Assembly (NCBI GenBank): GCA_025558095.1
Contig: JAIVFI010000039.1
Span: 372,001-436,000, forward strand
Direction of reading: 5' to 3'
From: Hyaloraphidium curvatum SAG 235-1
Taxonomy: Eukaryota; Fungi; Monoblepharomycota
Length of the DNA: 64,000 bases
Shown: one piece after another, positions 17,355 to 28,347 of the stretch
Layout: each line of letters begins with the position of its first letter
Numbering within the stretch: position 1 is the stretch's first letter
Notes under the pieces: model-generated
What the model saw: only the letters and a program-made list of their open reading frames with translations
The model's database searches: none
Told to the model about the DNA's origin: nothing
Made by a program: the position numbers and the translations under genes

Positions 17355-18329
17355 TCAGATTCGCGGAGGACCTACAGCTTTCCGCGCGCCGGCAACGCCG
17401 ATCCCTTCTACCGCACATCCCACCGCATCGGATCTATCAAATTTTCGAGAACGCTCTAGTTTGAGAGCCCGAGGCCGCCGCGAGGCACGAGTCGCGGCGG
17501 CGTAAGCGACCGGGGGGTTCAAAGCCTCCTCCCGCTCGGCCGCCCGACTTCCTTGCATCCCCGAGCGCGGCCCTCGCACATCACTCCGCCAATCCACATC
17601 TGTTTGCTTGCCCGAAGCATTCTCCGTGCCTAGCTCGGAGGAATGCGCCCCACTGCAACGGGGCGCCCGTCCCGACCAGGGGTCCTCCAGCCAATGGGGT
17701 TCCCTCGGCCATTCCAGGTTCCATCGGGGCCCCGGGACCGATTCGCTTCCCGAAGAGCGCCACAGGTCCGACGCATCGTGCTCCGTGAGCACCCACGGTG
17801 CCGAGGCCACCAGCTGGTGCCACCTCGCGAACACGGCGAACGCGTGGCTGCCAAAGTCCGCCGACGGTGGCGACGGCCCCAGCTTGCCGGCGCCGGGATC
17901 GAGGTTGTAGGACGAGCGGAAGCTCCCGAGCAGCGGGCCGACGATGAAGTACGAGACCAGGAGCACGGAGCTCGCGATGCCGCAGCCCAGGGCGCGCGGG
18001 GAGAAGCGCCCGCCGCCGAACACCGCCGGGGCGGGGGACAGGGCGACCGCGACGGCGGCCCACGAGGCGAACCGCAAAAGCACGCGGGCGTTGAGCGGCG
18101 CCAGCAGCACCTGCAGCCGCAGCCAGAAGCCCAGGTGGCCGCTCAGCGCCGACACGGCTTTCTGCAGCGCGGCGCGCGTCAGCGGGTCGCCCGAGCGCAT
18201 CTCCGCCGCGGGGTCCGCGGCCGGCGGCAGCAGGCCGGACTCGACAACGGCGGACGGTTGCAGGGCGCCCGGGACGAGGGCGAGCCACTCGCGGCCCGAG
18301 AAGTCGGCGAGCCGGTCGGCGGGCTCCAT
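17355..18329 (-). pseudogene. 3'-truncated paralog of the 7-TM family (N-terminus to TM2 only)
   Basis: ADFSGREWLALVP...DPLTRAAL...GGRFS...SHAFAVFARWHQLV matches the intact paralogs. Similarity ends near 17800 and TM3-7 are absent. Confidence 0.7.
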
Positions 18330-18347
18330 TGTCCTCGTCCGCGGTCC

Positions 18348-18566
18348 GGTGGAACCGGCCGTCTGGGTGATGTGCGAACGATCCAGGCTCTGCTGGAGCT
18401 AGACCCAGAGCTAGACCCAGAGCTGGTGGTGCTCAAGTTGGACTTGCAGAACGCCTTCAACTGCCTTCCCCGGCGCCTGGTCTTCCGCTGGGTCCGCCAG
18501 TTCCCCGCGCTGATCCCCTTCTTCCGCACGTTCTACGGGGGACCGTGCCGGATCGTCCTACCATGA
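18348..18566 (+). mobile_element. Non-LTR retrotransposon reverse transcriptase fragment (CRE/Cnl1-like)
   Basis: GG...VRTIQALLELDPELDPELVVLKLDLQNAFNCLPRRLVFRWVRQFPALIPFFRTFYGGPCRI matches the RT subdomain-3 pattern 'LD.xNAFN.I.R...P.L..F....Y..P' of early-branching R2/CRE elements. Contains a 12-bp duplication (GAGCTAGACCCA x2). Confidence 0.75.
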
Positions 18567-18609
18567 CGTCCTGGGGAAGGCCGTCTTCTATGCTGTCTCG
18601 GCATATGGT

Positions 18610-19178
18610 CCCCTGCGCCGGCCCTGCCCCCCGTTGGGGTGAAGTTCTTGAAGGTCCCCAGCCACGCGGTCGCCACCACGACGAAGGCGAGCTCGGAGAG
18701 GACGACGACCGCGGTGGCGAGGGACCACAGGCCCGTGCAGCGCGATCCGCGAGGCCCACGGGACCGCAGCGAGGTGCACGTTAAGAAGGAAAAGAAGGAA
18801 CGCGCTGCGGCGGGCGCACTCGCGGAGCAGGGTACGCCGGTCGAGGCCGGGGCGGGCCGTGCCGGGCCGTTGCCGCGGACGAGCGTGCCGGAGCCACGGG
18901 GCGCCGGCGGCGTCGGGACGATGGCGAGCCATTCCGCCTCGGTGAAATCGGCGAGCTCCGAGCCGCCGTCCTTGTCGCCCATCGTCGGAAGGCGGCGCGT
19001 TGACGGTGGACCTTTCCGGCAGAAAATGGGGGCGACGGACCCGCGATCCCCTCGCTGCCCGCCGTGCGAGGCAAAGAGGAAGCACCCCGCCCGCAACAAC
19101 CACGGGGTCCTTCGCGACTTGCTCCTTTGCTCCGCCAAACTGTTCCGAGGCGCTGCGGCGAACCGCACGGCACGGAAC
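18610..19178 (-). pseudogene. Frameshifted, truncated duplicate of the 5' end and upstream region of the 21570-23114 gene
   Basis: MGDKDGGSELADFTEAEWLAIVPTPPAPRGSGTLVRG (ATG 18982) is nearly identical to the 23114 gene, followed by frameshifts and an internal deletion. About 200 bp upstream (18983-19178) aligns with 23115-23318. Confidence 0.9.
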
Positions 19179-19474
19179 AGGAAATCCAATCGCGCCTGCA
19201 TGTTCTTGTCACGCTCCGCGAAACCCGGAAGCGGTGGTTGCTCGCGATCAAGACCCCCACAACCGGGCTCTTGGCATCGCGCCCCCGCTGCAACAATGGC
19301 TTCAGCGGCGCACTGAAGCCGCCGCTGTCGACGTTCCGGCCCCTGCGCATCGTGCGGAGCGCCAAGGTCGGAGACCAGCGAGTTTCCCCGGTTGAGCGCA
19401 AGGCAGCCATCGAAGAATCCGGAACGGGACAAGGGATGCTTCTTGTATTGGCCAACCATGGTTGCTACGAGCCC

Positions 19475-21028
19475 CTACCGGTGGGGACAGTACGATTGGA
19501 TGGTAACGAAGATCCCGAACCCTCTCAAGATGCCCCATAACCCCACCGTGAGTGTGACGACCGTGACGACCACGGTCCTGATCAGTGAGAATGACACCGG
19601 GAACCCGAAGAGGCGGTACCGGTGTCGCTCAATGCCGAGGAACGACGACAGCAGCGCGTCGTGGGCCCGCAGCGCGTTCACCACCTCGGCGGGGGGCGGC
19701 GGCCCGGCCCGCGGGCGCGCGGCGTCGGCGAGCATCTCGCGGATGCGCTGCTGCGCCTCGTGGTATACCCCCGCAAGGTCGTCCACGGCGAGGTTGGCCA
19801 GCGAGAGCATGGAGAGGTCCACGGCGAAACATCCGCCGGTCCGGAGGAGTAGCGCGAGCGGGCCGAAGGTGATGCAGGAGCCGACGGCGCTCGTGATGGT
19901 GGCGCAGAGGGTGAAGAATACCAAAGCGAGGAACATGTTCACGGGGCCAACAAGCTGCACGCCGACGCCCCACGATAGGGCGGGGGCAAGCTGGTTGTGT
20001 AGGTCCACATAAAGTTCCCGGTTGCCGATAAGCTCCTGCAGTTCGGCCTCCGAAACGCCTCCCTCGAGAGCGACCGAATAGCGCTCGAAGAAGGAGCCGA
20101 AAGCGGTGTCGACAGCCCTCTTTCCGAGCCTCCTGTGCAGGTCCAATATGGCCGACGGCGAAGAAGGCACTCCGACAACGCCAGGAACTGCGAACCAAAG
20201 GACCATGAACACGAAAACGACGCCCATCAGGGCGGACCACCATGTGGTCCAGAACGGAGCACCGAAGGTGAACAGCGGGGTCACCACAGGGCACAGATAG
20301 GCACCGAAGTGGGTGGCAAGGACAACCAGGATCTTGACCAACTGCTGCACTCCTCCCGTCCTCCCGATCCCGCCCGCGCAGGAAGATCTGTCGCAGGCAC
20401 AGAAGGGGTCCTTCTCCCGGTGCGAAATAAGCCTCGAGACGGCCCCCGAAACCGTTCCGGCTTCCGCCTGCTGGGCACCCGCGGCAGCGTGCCCGGCGCG
20501 GACCAGCTGGCTCCACCGCGCAAAACCGGCGAGGTAGTGGGTCCCCATGTCCAAGCCGTCGCCCGATTCCGCCCTGCCTTCGTGGGCCAGCCTATTCGAG
20601 GGAATGAACGGATAGATGCTCAAGAAAGCGAAACCACCCGCAAACCCGGCGAAGGAGGCAGCGATCTGCGCGCTGCCGAAACGGCCGTCGTCAAAGTACC
20701 ATCCCAGCCCCAATACCGTCAACAAAGAGGCCACGAAGCCGTAGAAGCGGACCGCAAGCCGGCGGCCGACGGGCCACAGGGCAAACTGCGCCCGGACCAG
20801 CACGCGGAAGAGAGGCGGGAGCTCGCCGAGCAGCGCGTTTCTGGTGAGCGGGTCGGAGGCGCGCGCCGCCGTGGCGAGGTCGGCGGGGGAGCATTTCCAC
20901 GCGGCAGCGCTGTCGGACGGTGTGCCGCCCGACGCGAAGATCAACGCCCTCTGCGATGGTTGGGACCGCGGGACGAGCGCGAGCCACTCGCGGGGCATGA
21001 AGGAAGCCGGCACGGGCAGATGGTCCAT
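19475..21028 (-). CDS. 7-TM membrane protein, family member A (GRL/7TMIC-like)
   Basis: Intronless, 517 aa, about 7 hydrophobic segments. Family motifs REWLALVP, DPLTR, ARWSQLV, DPFCACDRSSCAG, LYVDLH, GSCI and RLFGFPVSFSLIRTVVVTVVTLTVGLWGILRG..CP. Confidence 0.85.
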   Translation of the reverse strand: MDHLPVPASFMPREWLALVPRSQPSQRALIFASGGTPSDSAAAWKCSPADLATAARASDPLTRNALLGELPPLFRVLVRAQFALWPVGRRLAVRFYGFVASLLTVLGLGWYFDDGRFGSAQIAASFAGFAGGFAFLSIYPFIPSNRLAHEGRAESGDGLDMGTHYLAGFARWSQLVRAGHAAAGAQQAEAGTVSGAVSRLISHREKDPFCACDRSSCAGGIGRTGGVQQLVKILVVLATHFGAYLCPVVTPLFTFGAPFWTTWWSALMGVVFVFMVLWFAVPGVVGVPSSPSAILDLHRRLGKRAVDTAFGSFFERYSVALEGGVSEAELQELIGNRELYVDLHNQLAPALSWGVGVQLVGPVNMFLALVFFTLCATITSAVGSCITFGPLALLLRTGGCFAVDLSMLSLANLAVDDLAGVYHEAQQRIREMLADAARPRAGPPPPAEVVNALRAHDALLSSFLGIERHRYRLFGFPVSFSLIRTVVVTVVTLTVGLWGILRGFGIFVTIQSYCPHR

Positions 21029-21569
21029 GGCGCGTCGCTCTCGGTCGGGGTTTTCGGTTGGAGGGTCTTCGGACCGTTGCAGTGCCATCCAAGAGCAGCA
21101 AGATGGCGACTTCGATGGGATGCTTCTGAGCACGGGCTGGTGTCACGCCGCTGCAACCGTTTCTGGGTTCCCACGCGGCGGTCCTCTGCCTTTGAGTTCA
21201 GCTCCCTTCAACTCCTAACGGCGAAGCCCTGCCCCCCGGAACCTACGCTTGGTCCGCCTCGTCTTGCCACGGAACTGTCGCCTCCACACCCGATCACTTA
21301 CCTCATCCCACTTTACAAAGCAGTTATTCCCGGGCGGCAGGATCCATCCTTTGCACCTTTTGCCGTCGAGCACCAGGATCGGCGCTTTGACTGACGGGGG
21401 GGGACAGCCTTCTCCCGTCCGCCACAGACCCAGCTCGCATCGCCGGTCGCGTCGCCCGCCCCTTCGCGGTTCGCTTGCCCGGTGCTCCCCCGCGCACGGT
21501 GCGCTCGCAGAAGGCCCATCGTGGGTCCGATACCGCGGCCCAAGAAGTTGCGGGCCGCAGGGGCACCCG

Positions 21570-23114
21570 TCACCTCGTCGGGCACACGGATCCCAGCGTG
21601 AAGAACACGGATCCGCGCAGCACGGACCACAGCCCGATCGCCAGCGTGAACACGGTCACGAGGAACGTCCGCAGCACCCCGAAGTCCACCACGAACCCCA
21701 GGAACCTCCCCCTGAACCCCGCTGCCTCGCGGAACGAGGCCAGCAGCCTGTCGTGCGTCCCCAACGCCTCGAGCAGCCCCGCGCGGTCCGGGCCGGAAGG
21801 GAGGGACCGCGCGCGCACGAGCTTGTCCCGGATCTCGGCCTGCGCCTCGCGGTACAGCTCCGCGATGCCGTCGATCTGCGCGTTGGAGAGGGCGACGTGG
21901 GCGAGGTCCGTCACGGTGACGCAGAGCAGGAAGCCGAAGGTGACGGCGACGTAGGCGGGGATGCAGGAGCCCGCGGCGAGGCAGAGGACCAGGGGAACGC
22001 CGGCGGCGACGCCGATGCCGCCGAGGAAGGTGCGACCCGAGAGAACGAGGGAGACGCGGCGCTCCCAGATGGATGCGAGCCGGTGGTGGAGCTTGGCGTA
22101 GAGCGCGCCGTCGGGGGGCCGCGGCGGGGGGTCCCCGGAGAAGATGGCGCGCTCGAAGGCGTCGAGGAAGCTGCCGAGCGCGAGGAACATGGCGCGGCGC
22201 TGGATCCGGAGTGAAAGTCGCAGCAGCGAGGCGTTGGTGTTGAAGCGCCCGGCCACGTTCAACGGGACAAAGTCCAGGTTGGCCAGCACGGCCAGCGCTC
22301 CCGCAACGGCCCATGCCGAGCTCCAAAACGCGGCGGCGTGGACCAGGAGGGGGTTCGCCACGATGAGGAAGGGGCCCGCGGTGAGGGGGACCATCCGGAA
22401 GAGCGCCTCGGCCAGGCAGAGCACCGGGGCGCTCCGGACGAGCTTGCCACCGCAGTTCGGGGCGCCGCAAGGGCACAGGGGATCCCCGTCCTGGTGCCGT
22501 ACGAGCGGGGAGGCCGACGCACCGGGGGGATCCGCGGCCCGTTCGTGGTCCGTTTCCGCCGCGCCGGGCCCCTCGGGCTTCCCGGACCGCACGAGCTGGG
22601 ACCACCGCACGAGGCCGGCCAGCGAGTGCGCGTCGTAGGAAACCTCCCCCGGGGCCGCGGCCCCGGCCCTGCCCCCCGCCGCCGGGGCAAAGTTCTTGAA
22701 CGTCCCCAGCCACGCAGACGGCACGGCGACCATCAGAAACACGAGCAGCGCGTAAAAGAGCGCGGCGGAAATGCCGGCGGCCAGCTGCGGGGTCGCGTAC
22801 CGCCCGTCGTTGAATGCGAGCTCGGAGAGCACGACGGCGGCGGTGCAGAGCGACCAGAGGCCGGTGCGGAGGACGATCCGCGAGGCCCACGGGACCGCCG
22901 CGAGGTGCACTTCGAGGAGGAAAAGGAGGAACGCGCTGCAACGGCGCACCTCGCGGAGCAGGGTGCGCCGGTCGAGGCCGGGGCGGGCGGGGCCGGGGCC
23001 GCCGCCGCGCACGAGCGTGCCGGAGCCACGGGGCGCCGGCGGCGTCGGGACGATGGCGAGCCATTCCGCCTCGGTGAAATCGGCGAGCTCCGGGGGGCCG
23101 TCCTTGTCGCCCAT
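21570..23114 (-). CDS. 7-TM membrane protein, family member B (GRL/7TMIC-like)
   Basis: Intronless, 514 aa. Motifs AEWLAIVP, VRWSQLV, DPLCPCGAPNCGG, LYAKLH, GSCIP and RFLGFVVDFGVLRTFLVTVFTLAIGLWSVLRG..CP. Confidence 0.85.
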   Translation of the reverse strand: MGDKDGPPELADFTEAEWLAIVPTPPAPRGSGTLVRGGGPGPARPGLDRRTLLREVRRCSAFLLFLLEVHLAAVPWASRIVLRTGLWSLCTAAVVLSELAFNDGRYATPQLAAGISAALFYALLVFLMVAVPSAWLGTFKNFAPAAGGRAGAAAPGEVSYDAHSLAGLVRWSQLVRSGKPEGPGAAETDHERAADPPGASASPLVRHQDGDPLCPCGAPNCGGKLVRSAPVLCLAEALFRMVPLTAGPFLIVANPLLVHAAAFWSSAWAVAGALAVLANLDFVPLNVAGRFNTNASLLRLSLRIQRRAMFLALGSFLDAFERAIFSGDPPPRPPDGALYAKLHHRLASIWERRVSLVLSGRTFLGGIGVAAGVPLVLCLAAGSCIPAYVAVTFGFLLCVTVTDLAHVALSNAQIDGIAELYREAQAEIRDKLVRARSLPSGPDRAGLLEALGTHDRLLASFREAAGFRGRFLGFVVDFGVLRTFLVTVFTLAIGLWSVLRGSVFFTLGSVCPTR

Positions 23115-23740
23115 CGTCCTAATGGTGGTGGTTGACGGTGGAACTTTCCGGCAGAAATGGGGCGACGGACCCGCGATCCCATCGCTGCCCGGAGAGCGGC
23201 CTCCCGCGAGGCAACGAGGAAGCACCCCGCCCGCACCAACCACGGGGTCCTTTGCGCCTTGCTTCTTTGCGCAGCCGAATCGTTCTGCGGGGTTGCGGCG
23301 AACCGCACGGCACGGAACCCACCATCCCAGTCCATCGCTCCCCCCGAAGGCCGGGCAAGGCCGGACCGCAAAACGAGGTTCGAAGCAATGAGATCGGCCG
23401 GGCATCTGTTTGGCGGCTGCATGCGGGGGGCGGATGCAGGCTGTCGGCCCGATCCCGGACGCGGGCTTCCGTCCATTCCTTCAAGAGCCCCGCGCGACCG
23501 ACAAAGCAGCTCCGCCGCACCCAGATCCCATCTGTCCCCATCTTCTCCCGTGCCGTGCGCTGCGTGCAGCGTTCGATCCTGCCCCAGATCTGGCGCGAAG
23601 CCCCGTGTTTGCGCGCGGGATTTCCGCCTAGTCCCCACTCTAACCCCCGGGGGGCGCCTTAGAGCCGCCGACGCTTTTCTCCACCGCCGCCATAAAGCGC
23701 GCCGAAGCTCCAAAGACCCGCTGCCCATCACGCCCCCGCG

Positions 23741-26557
23741 ATGTCCTTGCCCGGTGCGCCCGCGGCGGAGGGCTCGCCCGGGCCGGACGGCGCAGGCGTA
23801 CCGGCGGTGGCGGGGCCCGTGCCGCCGCCCATCGTTCTGGTGGAACCGGGGCACCCGCAGTACATGTGGCCGTCGCAGCGACGGGCGCGGCTGGAGCTGG
23901 CGGCGCAGAGGAAGCGCGGGGCGCAGCAGGCGCAGGCTGCACCGGCGGGCCCGCAGCCGCCGACGGGGGCCGCCCCCGACGGGCAGCCCGCGGGAGAGGG
24001 GCCGCCGCCGCCCGCCGCGCCCGCGCCCGCCGCCCCGGCTCTGCCCGTCCCGCCGCCGCCCGAGCGGCGCGTGGTCGCCGACGCCCCGCTCGTCGTCAAG
24101 AAGCGCGCGCGCGGCCCCGCGATGGGCGCGTCGGGCGGGCAGGGCGCCCCCGCGCCCACGCCGCGCCCCGTCACGCTGCACCTGCCGATGCCGCTGCCGA
24201 TGCCGCCAAACGCGCTGGTGCTGCCCGGCGCCGCGGACATCCCGCTGCTGGCGCAGGCCGCTGCCGCCCGGCAGGACCCGGAACCACATGAAGTCAACGG
24301 GCACCCCCCTCCCGCGGTGCCCGAACCCCCCGCCCCGCGCGGCCCCGTGCCGCCGCAGCCAGGCCCGCAGCCGCCCAAGCCGCGCCAGCCAAAGCGCCGC
24401 CGCGACCGCCAGCCGGCCCCGGACCGCCGCGTGGCCGTGCCCCCGCTGGCATTCCCCGAGCGCGCCGACAACGAGGCCGGCCTGCGCAACCTGATGGTGT
24501 TCTACGAGGCCGCCCGCAAGCAGGTGACATGCGGCCGCACTGTTTTCGGCTCCTTGTTCACTTTTTGACCGCGTCCCCCCTTGTCATCAGATCCAAGCGT
24601 GGGGCCCCGAGGCCACCTGGCGCATCGACCTCGTCCTCGACCCCCCCGCCCCCTCCCGCGCCCCCACCCCCCCTCCCGAACCGCTGTACCACACCCTCCC
24701 TGGCCCCCCCGCCCCCGTCCCGATCCCCATCCCCCTCGGCCCGACGGAGCTCCTCCCCCCCGTGGACTTCCCCGCGCCGCCGACGGACCCCACCCTCGCG
24801 CACCGGATCCACCTCGAGGCGATGCCCCGCGCGCTGGCGCTCGAGTCGCGGCCGGGGGCCAGGGCCGACCCCGAGATGCTGGGGTTCGCGGAGTGGGCGG
24901 TGCCGTGGGGCGAGATCGTGCTGCCCGCCGCCGCCGAGGGGCGCAGGGGGGGGGTGAGGGGGGAGGAGATGCTGGCCTACGCGCAGGGCGAGGTCAGGAG
25001 GCTGGAAGCCGAGGTGCGTTGCTTCGTTGCGGCCGTCTGCGGCGAGAGCGGGTGCTGATGTGCGGTCCGCTGCGGGGACAGCTCGAGGTCACCCGCATGC
25101 GCGCGCTGGTCAACGACTCGCACCACGCCGCCGACCGCGCCGTGCTGCTCTCCCGCTTGCACGCCTACGCGGAGCGGTGCGCGCTGCTCGAGCGCGAGAT
25201 CCGCCGCCGCGACGCGCGCCTGGCGATGGGCGTGCGCGGCGGGCCGGTCGTGGTGCGCGAGCCCGTCCCCGGTGCGTTTGCAGGCGGGGGGTGGGGCGGG
25301 CTGGGCGCGCTGGCGGAGGCGGCGGGGGACAGCGAGGGCGGGGAGGGGTGGGAGCCCGGGGAGGCGAGCGGGAGCGAGGGGGAGAGGCCGGTCAGGAGGC
25401 AGCCGCTGCGGGCCGCGAGGATGGGGGAGGTTCCGGAGATGCAGGTGCAGCCGGGGCAGCTTGCTGGGGAGGACGACGGCGAGGACGGGGAGATGGAGGT
25501 CGCGGCGAGGTTGCTGGCCAGGGCGGCGGAGCACCCGCTCCCGCCCGAGGAGCCGCGGCGCCGTCCCCCGAAGCCGAGCGGGGGGCCCAAGCCGCCCTCC
25601 GGGAGGAAATCGCTGCGCCGGACGGGGTGGGCGGAAAAGGCGGGGGCCAAGGTGCTCAAGCCGGACCTGCCGAGCGGGGTGGGGCCCAAGAAGATGAAGA
25701 AGACGGGGCTGCTGGCCAAGTTCGAGCGGGACATGGCGGGCATGCACCCGGGGGAGGAAAGCCTGGGGATGGGGGCGGGGTACGGGTACGCGTTCGCGCC
25801 CGGGCCGCAGGGCGGGGACGTGCGGAGCGCGGCGGAGAGGATGAGGGAGCGGATGCGGAGGATCGTGGACAGCCAGCCGGGCTCGCGCGCCGGGAGCGAA
25901 GGGCCGAGCCTCGAGGCGTCGGAGGAGGACGAGGGGGAGGAAGGCGAGGAGGAGGCGCGGCCACGCGGGCGGGGGTTCGCGATCGCGTTCGGGAGCGACG
26001 ACGAGGACGAGGAGGAGGAGAGGGCGGCGCGGAGGGCGAGGCAGAGGGAAAGGGAGAGGGAGGCGAGGAGGGAGAGGGAAAGGGAAAGGGCCGAGGCGCT
26101 CGCGGCCATGGAGGACTTCACCCCTGCGGGATCGGGTGCGGTGACGCCCGAGGACGCCTCGGACGACGCGCGGGAGACGTACGGGTACACGGGCCGCACG
26201 CCGCCCGGCTCCGTGATCCGCCGCAAGAAGCGCCGCGAGCCCAGGGAGCGCCCGCCGCCCGTCGAGAGCCGGCGCGACATGCCCACGCGCGCGGCACGGC
26301 CGACGTTCGACGCCGCGAGCCACCGCCGCCTCAGTTCGCGCAGGTCGCCGGGCCAGGAGAGCGAGGAGGAGGTGCCGGAGGAGCCGCTGGCGGTGGTGAT
26401 GACGGACGAGGGGCCGGGGGTGGTGATCGAGGAGGCGTTCGGGGTGCTGGATTTCGATCCGCACGAGGTGGCGGGCATCCTGACGCGCAGGGCCGAGGAG
26501 GAGGAGAAGGCGAGGGAGCAGAGGGCGCAGGGGCACAAGAGGGTCAAGTACACGTAG
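23741..26557 (+). CDS. Hypothetical Pro-rich/acidic-basic protein with a coiled coil (probably nuclear), 2 introns
   Basis: Exons at about 23741-24523, 24591-25013 and 25082-26557, joined by GT..AG introns. Coiled coil RCALLEREIRRRD, basic clusters RRKKRRE and HKRVKY. No family recognised. Confidence 0.6.
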
Positions 26558-26742
26558 GGGAAGGATCTTTGGGTAATGGAACGATGAATGGGCGGATCGA
26601 TCAACGGCCAGAGCCGAGGCGCGGCATTGACGTGCGAGAGAACCGGCGGAGTGGCGGGAGAGTGACCGGTTGCCAAGCCGGCAAGGGGACCATCGCCTGG
26701 AGGTCTCGCAGGATCGTTTGCCCGTTTGCACCGGCGAGTCGA

Positions 26743-28347
26743 ATGGACGGAGACGATGGCGACGGCGGGCTCTCCGCCCGGCAGCCCGACGTTGAGCGCG
26801 GCGCGACGGACCCGAAGGCGGCCGCCGACATGCAGGCCGGCGGCCCGGAGGCCGAGTCGCTGTCGGACGACGAGTGGCTCGTGCTGTTTGCCATGCCGGT
26901 CGACCCGATGGTGCCGGGCGGCACGCGGCCGCTGGACGAGCGGGCGGCCGACCCCGTCGCGGCGCCGCGGGAATCCGACCCGCTCACGCGCCGCACGCTG
27001 GCGGAGCTCTTCCGCGGTGCAGGCTTCGGCTTCCTCGCCGCGCTCAGGCAGATGCACGCGTCCAACGCCTGGATACTGAAGGCCTTTCTCGGCTTCGAGG
27101 TGCTCGCGCTCCCGGTGCTACTGGCGCTCCTCTGGACGGGCCTGAACGCGCCGGCTTCCTACGGGCGGGCCAAACTGATCGTCGGGCTCGTCGGGGCCGG
27201 AGCAGTGGTCACCGTGCGCCTCGCGGTGTACTTCTGGACCGCAGCCGCGCTTGTGGCTTCAATGGCGGCCGCGGCGGCCGCGGACCCGCAGGCTACCGAG
27301 CGGGATCGTCTCGCCACGCGTTCCAACATGCTTTTCCGGGCGCGGTGGATCCAGCTCCAAGAGCGTATGAGGGTTTCGGACACCGGCCGCGTTTCCGTGC
27401 TCCTCGTCCACGACCCGCTCGACGGCCTCTGCTCGTGCCCGCGGTGCGCATCGCCCCTCATCCGGCAGGACGTGTGGTTCCGGCTTGTTCCGGACCTCAT
27501 CGTGGACTTGCTCTTTATCGCGGCGATCTTTGTCCTCCTGCTGTGGACCCCCGCGGTCGTGCTGCCCGGATTTTGGAGCTCCTGGGGCGTCGTCGGGTTC
27601 GCGTTTGCCGTGTTCCATGTCATCGGGGAAGCCCTGTCGTACACAATCAGGCTCACTCTCGTGGAGACCGCCCCGGGGAGCCTGTTTGCCCGCCGCATGG
27701 TGCACCGGGCGCTGTCTGCATCCCTACGATCCTTCGTGAGGCGCTGCCGCGCACAGCTGGCGAAGGAGAAGACGACGGCCCGGAGCGACGAGCCTTCGAT
27801 GATCCAGGGGCGCGGCGAGCTCCACGTGCGCATCCTGACGGGTCTCGACCACGACTGGACGGGGCTCTTTTCGGGCATCGAGCTGTATCGCCGCTGGATG
27901 CTGGTCACCTGGCCCCTGTGCGCCGCCATCCTCGTCGCGAGCCTCACCGTCGGCCCGTGCATATGCAGCTACCAGATCGCCGCATTCGCCTTCAACGTCT
28001 GGACCGGCCTGCGCGAGATGCTCGTCGTCGCGTCGTTCAACCTCCGCGCCGACGACGTATCGGTGCTCTGCCACCAGGCGGCGCTGGCCGCGGACGGGAT
28101 CGCCGTTGACGCCTGCGCGCGGGGCACGCCGGACCCGGCGGCGCTGGAGGCCGTCCGCGGGCACGCGAGGCTGCTCCGCGGGTTCGCGGCGTCGCTTTCG
28201 AGGCACAGGGGGAGGATCCTCGGGGCCGCGGTGTCGTTCGGGACCGTCAGGGTCGTGGCGGTGACGCTGGTCACGGTCGGGTTCGCCCTGATCGGGGCCA
28301 TGCGCGGGTTCAGGGTGACCATCACCCTCGAGACGGTCTGTACGTGA
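26743..28347 (+). CDS. 7-TM membrane protein, divergent family member C (GRL/7TMIC-like)
   Basis: Intronless, 534 aa. Motifs DEWLVLF, DPLTRRTL, ARWIQLQ, DGLCSCPRC, GPCIC and RILGAAVSFGTVRVVAVTLVTVGFALIGAMRG..ETVCT. Confidence 0.8.
   Translation: MDGDDGDGGLSARQPDVERGATDPKAAADMQAGGPEAESLSDDEWLVLFAMPVDPMVPGGTRPLDERAADPVAAPRESDPLTRRTLAELFRGAGFGFLAALRQMHASNAWILKAFLGFEVLALPVLLALLWTGLNAPASYGRAKLIVGLVGAGAVVTVRLAVYFWTAAALVASMAAAAAADPQATERDRLATRSNMLFRARWIQLQERMRVSDTGRVSVLLVHDPLDGLCSCPRCASPLIRQDVWFRLVPDLIVDLLFIAAIFVLLLWTPAVVLPGFWSSWGVVGFAFAVFHVIGEALSYTIRLTLVETAPGSLFARRMVHRALSASLRSFVRRCRAQLAKEKTTARSDEPSMIQGRGELHVRILTGLDHDWTGLFSGIELYRRWMLVTWPLCAAILVASLTVGPCICSYQIAAFAFNVWTGLREMLVVASFNLRADDVSVLCHQAALAADGIAVDACARGTPDPAALEAVRGHARLLRGFAASLSRHRGRILGAAVSFGTVRVVAVTLVTVGFALIGAMRGFRVTITLETVCT

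Follow-up and report, generated by a model that had tools for sequence, protein, structure and literature searches.

The window (the whole 64-kb stretch of DNA analysed here, from the monoblepharid fungus Hyaloraphidium curvatum) contains three intact, intronless paralogs, A, B and C, together with two broken copies, all belonging to one family of predicted seven-transmembrane (TM) proteins (Table 1). A sequence-only reading of this DNA had described three intact paralogs of about 515-535 amino acids and two broken ones; the ORF lengths agree with that description, and a family hidden Markov model (HMM) identifies both fragments as N-terminal. Searching the six-frame translation of the whole 64 kb with the same HMM revealed no further family copies.

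Table 1. Coordinates of family members, fragments and features of paralog B within the 64-kb window.
Feature	Position	Strand	Description
Paralog A	19475..21028, including stop (codons 19478-21028)	-	Intact, intronless, 517 aa; family HMM 5-504, E 7e-154
Paralog B	21570..23114, including stop (codons 21573-23114)	-	Intact, intronless, 514 aa; HMM 3-505, E 2e-167
Paralog C	26743..28347, including stop (codons 26743-28344)	+	Intact, intronless, 534 aa, start codon inferred; HMM 4-503, E 1.5e-116
Broken copy 1	17766..18323	-	N-terminal fragment; HMM 7-196 of 505, E 3e-38
Broken copy 2	18536..18982	-	N-terminal fragment; tblastn, 47% identity to B residues 1-180 (most B-like)
H-x3-D-x2-C-x-C-x4-C cluster in B	22452..22496	-	H207, D211, C214, C216, C221; end of IL1, just before TM3
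C384 codon in B	21963..21965	-	5-residue loop EL3 (GSCI); 100% conserved
C511 codon in B	21582..21584	-	Extracellular C-terminal tail (VCP); 99% conserved
TM7a in B	21714..21791	-	Residues 442-467, cytosolic half of split TM7 (DSSP of model)
TM7b in B	21618..21683	-	Residues 478-499, most conserved membrane helix (DSSP of model)

A, B and C share 24-34% pairwise identity, are alignable end to end, and lack internal stops. GC content in these genes, which lie in a 68%-GC genome, is 0.82-0.93 at third codon positions vs. 0.51-0.54 at second positions, and A has an exact counterpart among NCBI proteins, the H. curvatum hypothetical protein P0017. Because of this third-position bias, the exact NCBI model for A, and the more than 100 paralogous loci with protein-level conservation described below, we conclude that all three are real genes, not chance ORFs. 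Contigs from a sequencing run labelled ‘RNA?’ (its type is uncertain) extend over A, B, both fragments and the A-B spacer; the run therefore cannot demonstrate transcription of the paralogs. Broken copy 1 retains only the N-terminal 40% of the protein (the N-terminus, TM1, TM2 and the start of IL1) within an ORF at 17355-18329, the rest of which is unrelated sequence. The HMM match in broken copy 2 (18735-18979, minus strand) covers HMM positions 3-88 across two frames, with a frameshift near 18850. Motifs quoted in the sequence-only reading all occur in B: LRIQRRAM (301-308), LY..LH (338-343), GSCI between TM5 and TM6 (382-385), and the C-terminal segment, which here reads RFLGFVVDFGVLRTFLVTVFTLAIGL (470-495).

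Seven TM segments were assigned by combining family-averaged hydropathy with the helices of two structural models (in B numbering ∼80-100, 110-134, 232-258, 269-289, 360-382, 388-408 and 478-499), all seven being helical in both models; an amphipathic helix at 61-77, whose family-averaged hydropathy stays under the threshold, was left out of the count. Lysine and arginine within 12 amino acids of the TM ends amount to 11.8 on the proposed cytosolic side vs. 2.7 outside, with the same direction in 30 of 30 paralogs. By the positive-inside rule, the predicted topology is N-in/C-out with seven TMs, in line with the 7TMIC layout cited in the sequence-only reading, and side chemistry agrees, the His/Cys3 cluster being predicted cytosolic and a conserved Cys pair predicted on the outer side.

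Structural criteria for the 7TMIC superfamily were taken from Benton & Himmel 2023 (PMC9998090). The short extracellular loops, long TM4-6 extensions and TM7a/7b split named as 7TMIC traits in the sequence-only reading are all predicted here. Extracellular loops average 9.3, 9.8 and 5.0 amino acids vs. 79.7, 72.8 and 67.8 for the intracellular loops. In both models, DSSP places the helices of TM4-6 (269-289 + 295-326, 338-353 + 355-382 and 387-436 in B; 277-306 + 310-340, 360-375 + 377-403 and 409-459 in C) giving 44-64 residues per helix or helix pair, which run on into the cytosol. TM7 of B is interrupted by a 10-residue break, which includes G473 (98% conserved), and is likewise split in C (helices 465-488 and 499-522, by DSSP).

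The AlphaFold2 models of B (the first modelled; pLDDT 87.1, pTM 0.87) and C (the second; pLDDT 87.7, pTM 0.88) were built from alignments of paralogs from one genome, with no templates. The training set of AlphaFold2 ended with PDB entries of April 2018, and we know of no 7TMIC structure released before that cut-off. When the models were compared with ∼48,000 PDB representatives, near-full-length matches were restricted to insect odorant and gustatory receptors (Or, Gr) and Orco, whose chains are aligned for about 80-94% of their length, and which take the top ranks for both models with two aligners. Or/Gr also come first for both models in Foldseek, though the scores are weak (E 0.05-0.6, prob up to 0.91), and the best match in an ESM-Atlas shape search is an arthropod cluster (TM score 0.45/0.50 over 300 residues). 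The likeness to Orco/Gr folds suggested by the sequence-only reading thus emerges from two divergent, independently modelled paralogs, neither of which has a better match to a GPCR or transporter among solved structures. These models support the conclusion that the proteins share the 7TMIC fold seen in insect odorant and gustatory receptors.

The expected sequence match to PF08395 or PF12056, on the other hand, did not materialize. A Pfam scan of A, B, C and 30 paralogs at E values up to 10 returned scattered chance matches only: none of the 30 members matches 7tm_7 (PF08395) or 7tm_6 (PF02949) at that threshold, and none matches the DUF3537 (PF12056) HMM. The PF08395 and DUF3537 HMMs likewise found no match in the H. 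curvatum genome, nor did they find any in the control genomes. Searched against PDB sequences, the family profile recovered no Or or Gr, giving weak partial matches to VMA21 and the P2Y1 receptor (E 0.07 for the latter). The TM7b columns of 100 paralogs do not contain the Gr TM7 motif, (T/S)Yhhhhh(Q/K/E)(F/L/M); the best register retains 1-2 of 4 positions, and the column profile lacks a conserved Tyr or Phe at motif position 2; this motif is considered diagnostic but not definitive for Gr/GRL proteins (Benton et al. 2020, PMC7746228). In a protein-language-model search, C falls nearest to DUF3537 (0.91) and to the 7tm_7/GUR/SRR clusters (0.87-0.89), which we count as weak evidence; DUF3537 proximity is 0.90-0.91 across the language-model lists, and Tmp39 ranks ahead of it in both. 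The family is, in short, a sequence orphan, and its proposed 7TMIC membership is structural only.

Conservation within the family is unevenly distributed. Mean pairwise identity is 46% in TM7b vs. 18-24% in TM1-6; across 100 paralogs, R482, T487, T490 and R500 (B numbering) are near-invariant in or beside TM7b, and invariant residues concentrate in the TM4-6 extensions, TM7a and TM7b. Insect receptors show a parallel pattern of conservation, and TM7b lines the pore in known 7TMICs. In the H/D/C3 cluster, the His and three Cys are present in 100% and the Asp in 96% of 100 paralogs, with pLDDT 91-95 at this site in the B model; we take the cluster as a probable site of Zn binding or acylation. 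A putative disulfide between C384 and C511 probably links EL3 with the C-terminal tail on the extracellular side, and the B model contains a beta-bridge between 384-386 and 504-506. The H/D/C3 cluster and the Cys pair are both peculiar to this family. An N-terminal motif, E-W-L-A-x-x-P, is also conserved.

Genome-wide, H. curvatum harbors at least 103 loci of this family. A 33-place pattern search of the genome for the invariant Cys motif found ∼350 copies in excess, while also catching unrelated dispersed repeats, and clustering at 50% identity yields 464 protein representatives, putting the estimated size of the family at roughly 350-460 members. The lineage-specific expansion proposed in the sequence-only reading is therefore real, and far larger than the window showed, but the family is not strictly species-specific, since one relative, present in JGI samples 3300043314 and 3300050339, sits on a metagenome contig of 54% GC. 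Metagenome scans using members P0007 and P0151 as queries found no relatives; word-index protein searches (with a single protein, an alignment or the C-terminal region) returned 2-6 proteins, all from H. curvatum, and are uninformative on other taxa. The accompanying suggestion that the genes evolve in tandem arrays is weakly supported: the 103 loci recovered are spread over 34 of 55 contigs, clusters among them are small and number just 14, and A, B and C fall in three different deep clades of a FastTree tree. Family copies are mutually 25-60% identical, yet their frames stay open, and repeat-like DNA identity between copies is absent. The family consists of old copies, most of them scattered through the genome.

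Among characterized proteins, the closest by structure are the insect Or/Gr/Orco receptors (7tm_6/7tm_7; MhOR5 7LIC, AgamOR28 8V3D, AaegOR10 8V02, Gr43a 8JM9, BmGr9 8VC1). The H. curvatum family is not detectably similar to these in sequence, lacks a TM7 motif of the TY...QF type, carries an 80-residue IL1 with the H/D/C3 cluster, the extracellular Cys pair and the E-W-L-A-x-x-P motif, and is encoded by intronless genes of a fungal host, where channel activity is putative. Other 7TMIC candidates in early-diverging fungi are the chytrid GRLs SpunGRL1 and SpalGRL1 (Spizellomyces; PMC7746228), which also largely lack the TM7 motif (1 of 4 positions kept) (PMC7746228); compared by description, these are single-copy and were identified by their HMM similarity to GRLs of animals, whereas the H. 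curvatum family has hundreds of copies and no 7tm_7 similarity. Plant DUF3537 proteins (PF12056) likewise form a 7TMIC family outside animals that lacks the TM7 motif, but have 4-12 members per family and a long IL3 (PMC7746228), in place of which the H. curvatum proteins have a long IL1. The available part of Himmel et al. 2023 (bioRxiv 10.1101/2023.08.30.555482) describes PHTF-like Class-B proteins, reported for Chytridiomycota and Blastocladiomycota, that combine 7TMIC features with a long IL1 between TM2 and TM3, a description that the H. curvatum IL1 (∼80 amino acids) resembles; that part mentions no large Class-B expansion.

We favor, with somewhat more confidence than doubt, the view that this very large sequence-orphan family (∼350-460 genes) has the 7TMIC fold and provides ligand-gated chemosensory channels. 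The TM4-6 cytosolic helices would correspond to the ‘anchor domain’ of insect receptors, and tetramers would assemble through these conserved anchor helices. A central pore would be lined by the conserved TM7b, which bears a polar stripe (T483/T487/T490/G494/S497), and the H/D/C3 cluster, placed where TM3 begins on the cytosolic side, could act to regulate gating or assembly. Hypervariable TM1-TM6 would form paralog-specific ligand pockets, which would make the family a repertoire of ligand-gated channels for chemical sensing. Both the fold and the conservation pattern suggest such a role; an Arg that is nearly invariant at each end of TM7b (R482, R500) would be unexpected in a simple cation pore. 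H. curvatum is a non-flagellate, non-motile fungus, so that the use for hundreds of chemoreceptors is not obvious, which counts against a chemosensory repertoire. The fuller proposition, that a non-flagellate planktonic fungus independently evolved ∼350-460 7TMIC ligand-gated channels, complete with a His/Cys3 regulatory module and a disulfide-stapled tail, is correspondingly more tentative, and we lean toward doubting it in that complete form.

The same fold evidence would be obtained if these proteins were true 7TMIC relatives acting not as ligand-gated chemoreceptors but as constitutive channels, transporters, scramblases or internal-membrane proteins. The host's lack of motility fits such an assignment, as does the long IL1, reminiscent of PHTF-like Class-B proteins that have no assigned chemosensory role; moreover, for most 7TMICs channel status is not known (Benton & Himmel 2023, PMC9998090). 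Housekeeping functions, however, rarely require ∼400 paralogs, and hundreds of deeply diverged copies with hypervariable TM1-6 alongside a conserved TM7b and anchor form the pattern of a receptor repertoire, so we regard a non-chemosensory role as unlikely, though it deserves serious consideration. Convergence of a new seven-TM fold on the Or/Gr helix arrangement, with neither 7TMIC ancestry nor mechanism, appears improbable: Or, Gr and Orco chains are the only ones in the PDB to align over so much of their length, at the top ranks for both models and both aligners, N-in topology co-occurs with long TM4-6 helices and a split TM7, and an embedding derived from sequence falls near DUF3537 and 7tm_7.

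Large lineage-specific seven-TM expansions are also known among Pth11-type and other fungal GPCR-like receptors, to which the H. curvatum family is analogous in scale and TM number, and the weak profile match to part of the P2Y1 receptor points the same way. The family nevertheless shows neither N-out topology nor GPCR seven-helix packing; GPCR and transporter readings were rejected on the predicted N-in topology and structure scores, leaving GPCR-like receptors a very remote prospect. Equally remote is the notion that the ORFs lack cellular function, whether as artefacts of annotating a GC-rich genome or as the cargo or remains of a repeated selfish element. Very high copy number, truncated copies and the dispersed repeats caught by the pattern search would be in keeping with this, but DNA-level identity between copies is not repeat-like, conservation is strongly position-specific, with Cys, His, Asn, Gly and Thr among the invariant residues, and alignments of the copies give a confident, coevolution-supported fold. 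Open frames at 25-60% identity, together with such conservation, the strong third-position GC bias and the confident fold, bear the mark of proteins long held under purifying selection.

The fungal 7TMICs described in the papers cited here are single-copy candidates from two Spizellomyces species and unspecified chytrid and blastoclad proteins. H. curvatum adds hundreds of intronless, ∼1.5-kb sequence-orphan paralogs with a confident predicted Or/Gr architecture, indicating that ∼2% of a fungal genome can be devoted to a family wholly unannotated by Pfam and sequence searches. If the fuller chemosensory proposition is correct, ∼350-460 channels would equal insect Or+Gr repertoires in size and be the largest set outside animals, and the 7TMIC fold would have undergone large-scale diversification for chemical sensing on two or more occasions; non-animal 7TMIC function would, moreover, become testable in easily expressed intronless genes. 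The family offers a case of receptor-like birth-and-death diversification of the 7TMIC fold outside animals, with natural variants useful for asking which helices make the pore and which the pocket, and simple constructs for electrophysiology and cryo-EM, through which one could ask whether the term ‘ion channel’ holds for ancient members of the superfamily.

Three intact, stop-free paralogs (A, B and C) and two N-terminal fragments constitute the receptor-like family in the window (see table), where a family HMM run in all six frames found no further copy. This is the gene set listed in the sequence-only reading, and open reading frames (ORFs), alignments and the six-frame HMM confirm it, along with every motif quoted there. 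A, B and C can be aligned over their full length (24-34% identity), and their GC fraction is 0.82-0.93 at third codon positions vs. 0.51-0.54 at second positions. With tblastn, fragment 2 extends over 18536-18982 (47% identical to B). An ORF on the plus strand at 17643-18566 had no Pfam match at E≤0.1. Paralog A exactly matches an NCBI protein model and is present in a collection of 15 billion proteins, in which B and C, as translated from the start codons chosen in this analysis, have no exact counterpart; public gene models for B and C may differ or be missing. A 3,020-nt contig from X1, the one sequencing run found (of uncertain type, available only as contigs), meets B at 21687-21714 and was read as a joint (21714/22604) skipping 889 nt, one side being 21 letters long; most likely this contig represents another paralog with a short identical stretch, rather than a splice.

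Family copies in the window and a candidate ORF upstream of paralog C
Feature	Position	Strand	Description
Paralog A	19478-21028	-	517 aa, intact, stop-free ORF
Paralog B	21573-23114	-	514 aa, intact, stop-free ORF
Paralog C	26743-28344	+	534 aa, intact, stop-free ORF
N-terminal fragment 1	17766-18323	-	Family HMM positions 7-196 of 505
N-terminal fragment 2	18735-18979	-	Family HMM positions 3-88, frameshift
Candidate ORF	24581-26557	+	658 aa; Pro/Arg-rich N-terminus, then long Glu/Arg/Asp-rich low-complexity part; no Pfam match

Structures were predicted using AlphaFold2 with templates off, for B from 30 paralogs (pLDDT 87.1, pTM 0.87) and for C from 100 family members (pLDDT 87.7, pTM 0.88), and each model was aligned to 48,161 PDB representatives, independently of Foldseek; insect odorant and gustatory receptors and Orco were the only matches over nearly the whole length. 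In both models, TM4, TM5 and TM6 form helices of 44-64 residues, and TM7 is broken in two (TM7a, B 442-467; TM7b, B 478-499) by a 10-residue linker in which G473 (B numbering throughout) is 98% conserved. Hydropathy averaged over the family gives seven spans; Lys and Arg within 12 residues of TM ends number 11.8 on the proposed cytosolic side vs. 2.7 outside, a bias seen in 30/30 paralogs, and mean loop lengths are 9, 10 and 5 aa outside the cell and 80, 73 and 68 aa inside. The seven spans, charge bias, loop lengths, long TM4-6 and split TM7 together agree with every structural hallmark of the seven-TM ion channel (7TMIC) superfamily whose assessment needs neither coordinates nor multimers, supporting the architecture originally proposed; as modelled, the family qualifies structurally as 7TMIC.

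Judged by sequence, the family falls outside Pfam 7tm_7, 7tm_6 and DUF3537. Pfam scans of A, B and C and of 30 paralogs yielded nothing beyond scattered chance hits, even at E values up to 10; among PDB sequences the family profile matched neither Ors nor Grs, and the Gr TM7 motif is absent. Searching the H. curvatum genome with Pfam DUF3537 and 7tm_7 gave no match, as was also true of the control genomes. The proximity of C to TMEM39 (0.92), DUF3537 (0.91) and 7tm_7/GUR/SRR clusters (0.87-0.89) in a protein-language-model search, with a low recognition score, is only a lead. The long IL1 of the family recalls that of PHTF-like Class-B proteins, as described by Himmel et al. Our literature searches found no paper tying Hyaloraphidium to gustatory-receptor-like proteins, and none on 7TMICs in chytrids besides two studies from the Benton laboratory in which chytrids are also named.

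The expansion suggested from sequence is real, and much larger than stated. Two genome searches combined, which scored the best ∼85 of 744 and of 889 first-look candidates and returned only strong matches, identified at least 103 distinct loci on 34 of the 55 contigs in this 31.9 Mb assembly. At the DNA level, a pattern encoding the invariant D-x2-C-x-C-x4-C motif, blind to members with other spacing (such as C), occurs 402 times vs. 51 for a reversed control, an excess of ∼350, and a profile run against 1.84 billion cluster representatives (50% identity) recovered 464 proteins at E≤1e-3 (299 at E≤1e-30). The accompanying tandem-array claim is weak: the loci include 14 small clusters, each of 2-3 genes within 20 kb, and a FastTree phylogeny of 99 members is star-like (median terminal branch near 1 substitution per site), placing A, B and C in three different deep clades, which argues that the local cluster is old rather than a recent tandem array.

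The Cys-motif DNA pattern also matched an identical 33-nt string containing TAG on several contigs of the H. curvatum genome (contig:position C1:1447054, C2:357778, C2:415788 and C7:695826), with near-copies elsewhere (e.g. C1:1506104, C1:1521777, C9:807937); this is a dispersed genome repeat unrelated to the receptor-like family. Some annotated members (proteins P0005, P0008, P0048, P0052 and P0121) are 710-788 aa long or are hit by the profile in several separate regions; in P0005, Pfam domains PF13563 and PF07823 (2'-5' RNA ligase/cyclic phosphodiesterase-like) accompany the family's C-terminal half. Merging or mis-modelling of genes is the probable explanation, true fusions being possible.

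Taxonomic range was read from the best 150 matches listed. Among 27 sampled, 26 were H. curvatum ‘hypothetical proteins’ and one was a cluster from another source (P0116/P0151, from JGI, ENA and Logan metagenome assemblies). Its gene lies within 1-1208 of a contig (L051) from JGI metagenome 3300043314, is also found in 3300050339, adjoins an SNF2-like gene, and scores E 1e-120 against the family HMM. This contig has 54% GC (68% in H. curvatum) and its gene shares no more than 54% identity with any copy in the H. curvatum genome, indicating that the family is present in at least one other eukaryote. The EL1 motif (FNDGRFG.AQLA) is in another frame, ∼60 nt before the start of the main ORF, which suggests that an intron or frameshift interrupts the gene.

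Several features are specific to the family, among them an E-W-L-A-x-x-P motif conserved in the N-terminal region (P23, 98%). H207, D211, C214, C216 and C221 (96-100% conserved) cluster at the cytosolic entry of TM3, a region confidently modelled in B, and form a probable Zn site; alternatively, the cluster may provide S-acylation sites. C384 (within the 5-residue EL3) and the tail residue C511 show 99-100% conservation, and in both models a small beta-bridge joins EL3 to the C-terminal tail. This arrangement fits a predicted extracellular C384-C511 disulfide, and thus supports a C-out topology.

Conservation is unevenly distributed, mean pairwise identity being 18-24% in the hypervariable TM1-6 vs. 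46% in TM7b and the C-terminal tail. Near-invariant residues map to the cytosolic extensions of TM4 (R303, R307, A308) and TM5 (Y339, L342, W350), and to TM7a (L458) and TM7b (R482, T487, T490 at 99%, R500); N411 in the TM6 extension is 100% conserved, and a small/polar stripe (T483, T487, T490, G494, S497) runs along TM7b. In solved Ors and Grs, the pore is lined by TM7b and the tetramer held by anchor helices (PMC9998090). The most economical reading of these conservation patterns is that TM7b and the anchor helices would make up a conserved core for pore and assembly, and TM1-6 would provide pockets specific to each paralog. The family would then represent a repertoire of putative ligand-gated channels, and a channel or chemoreceptor function is plausible.
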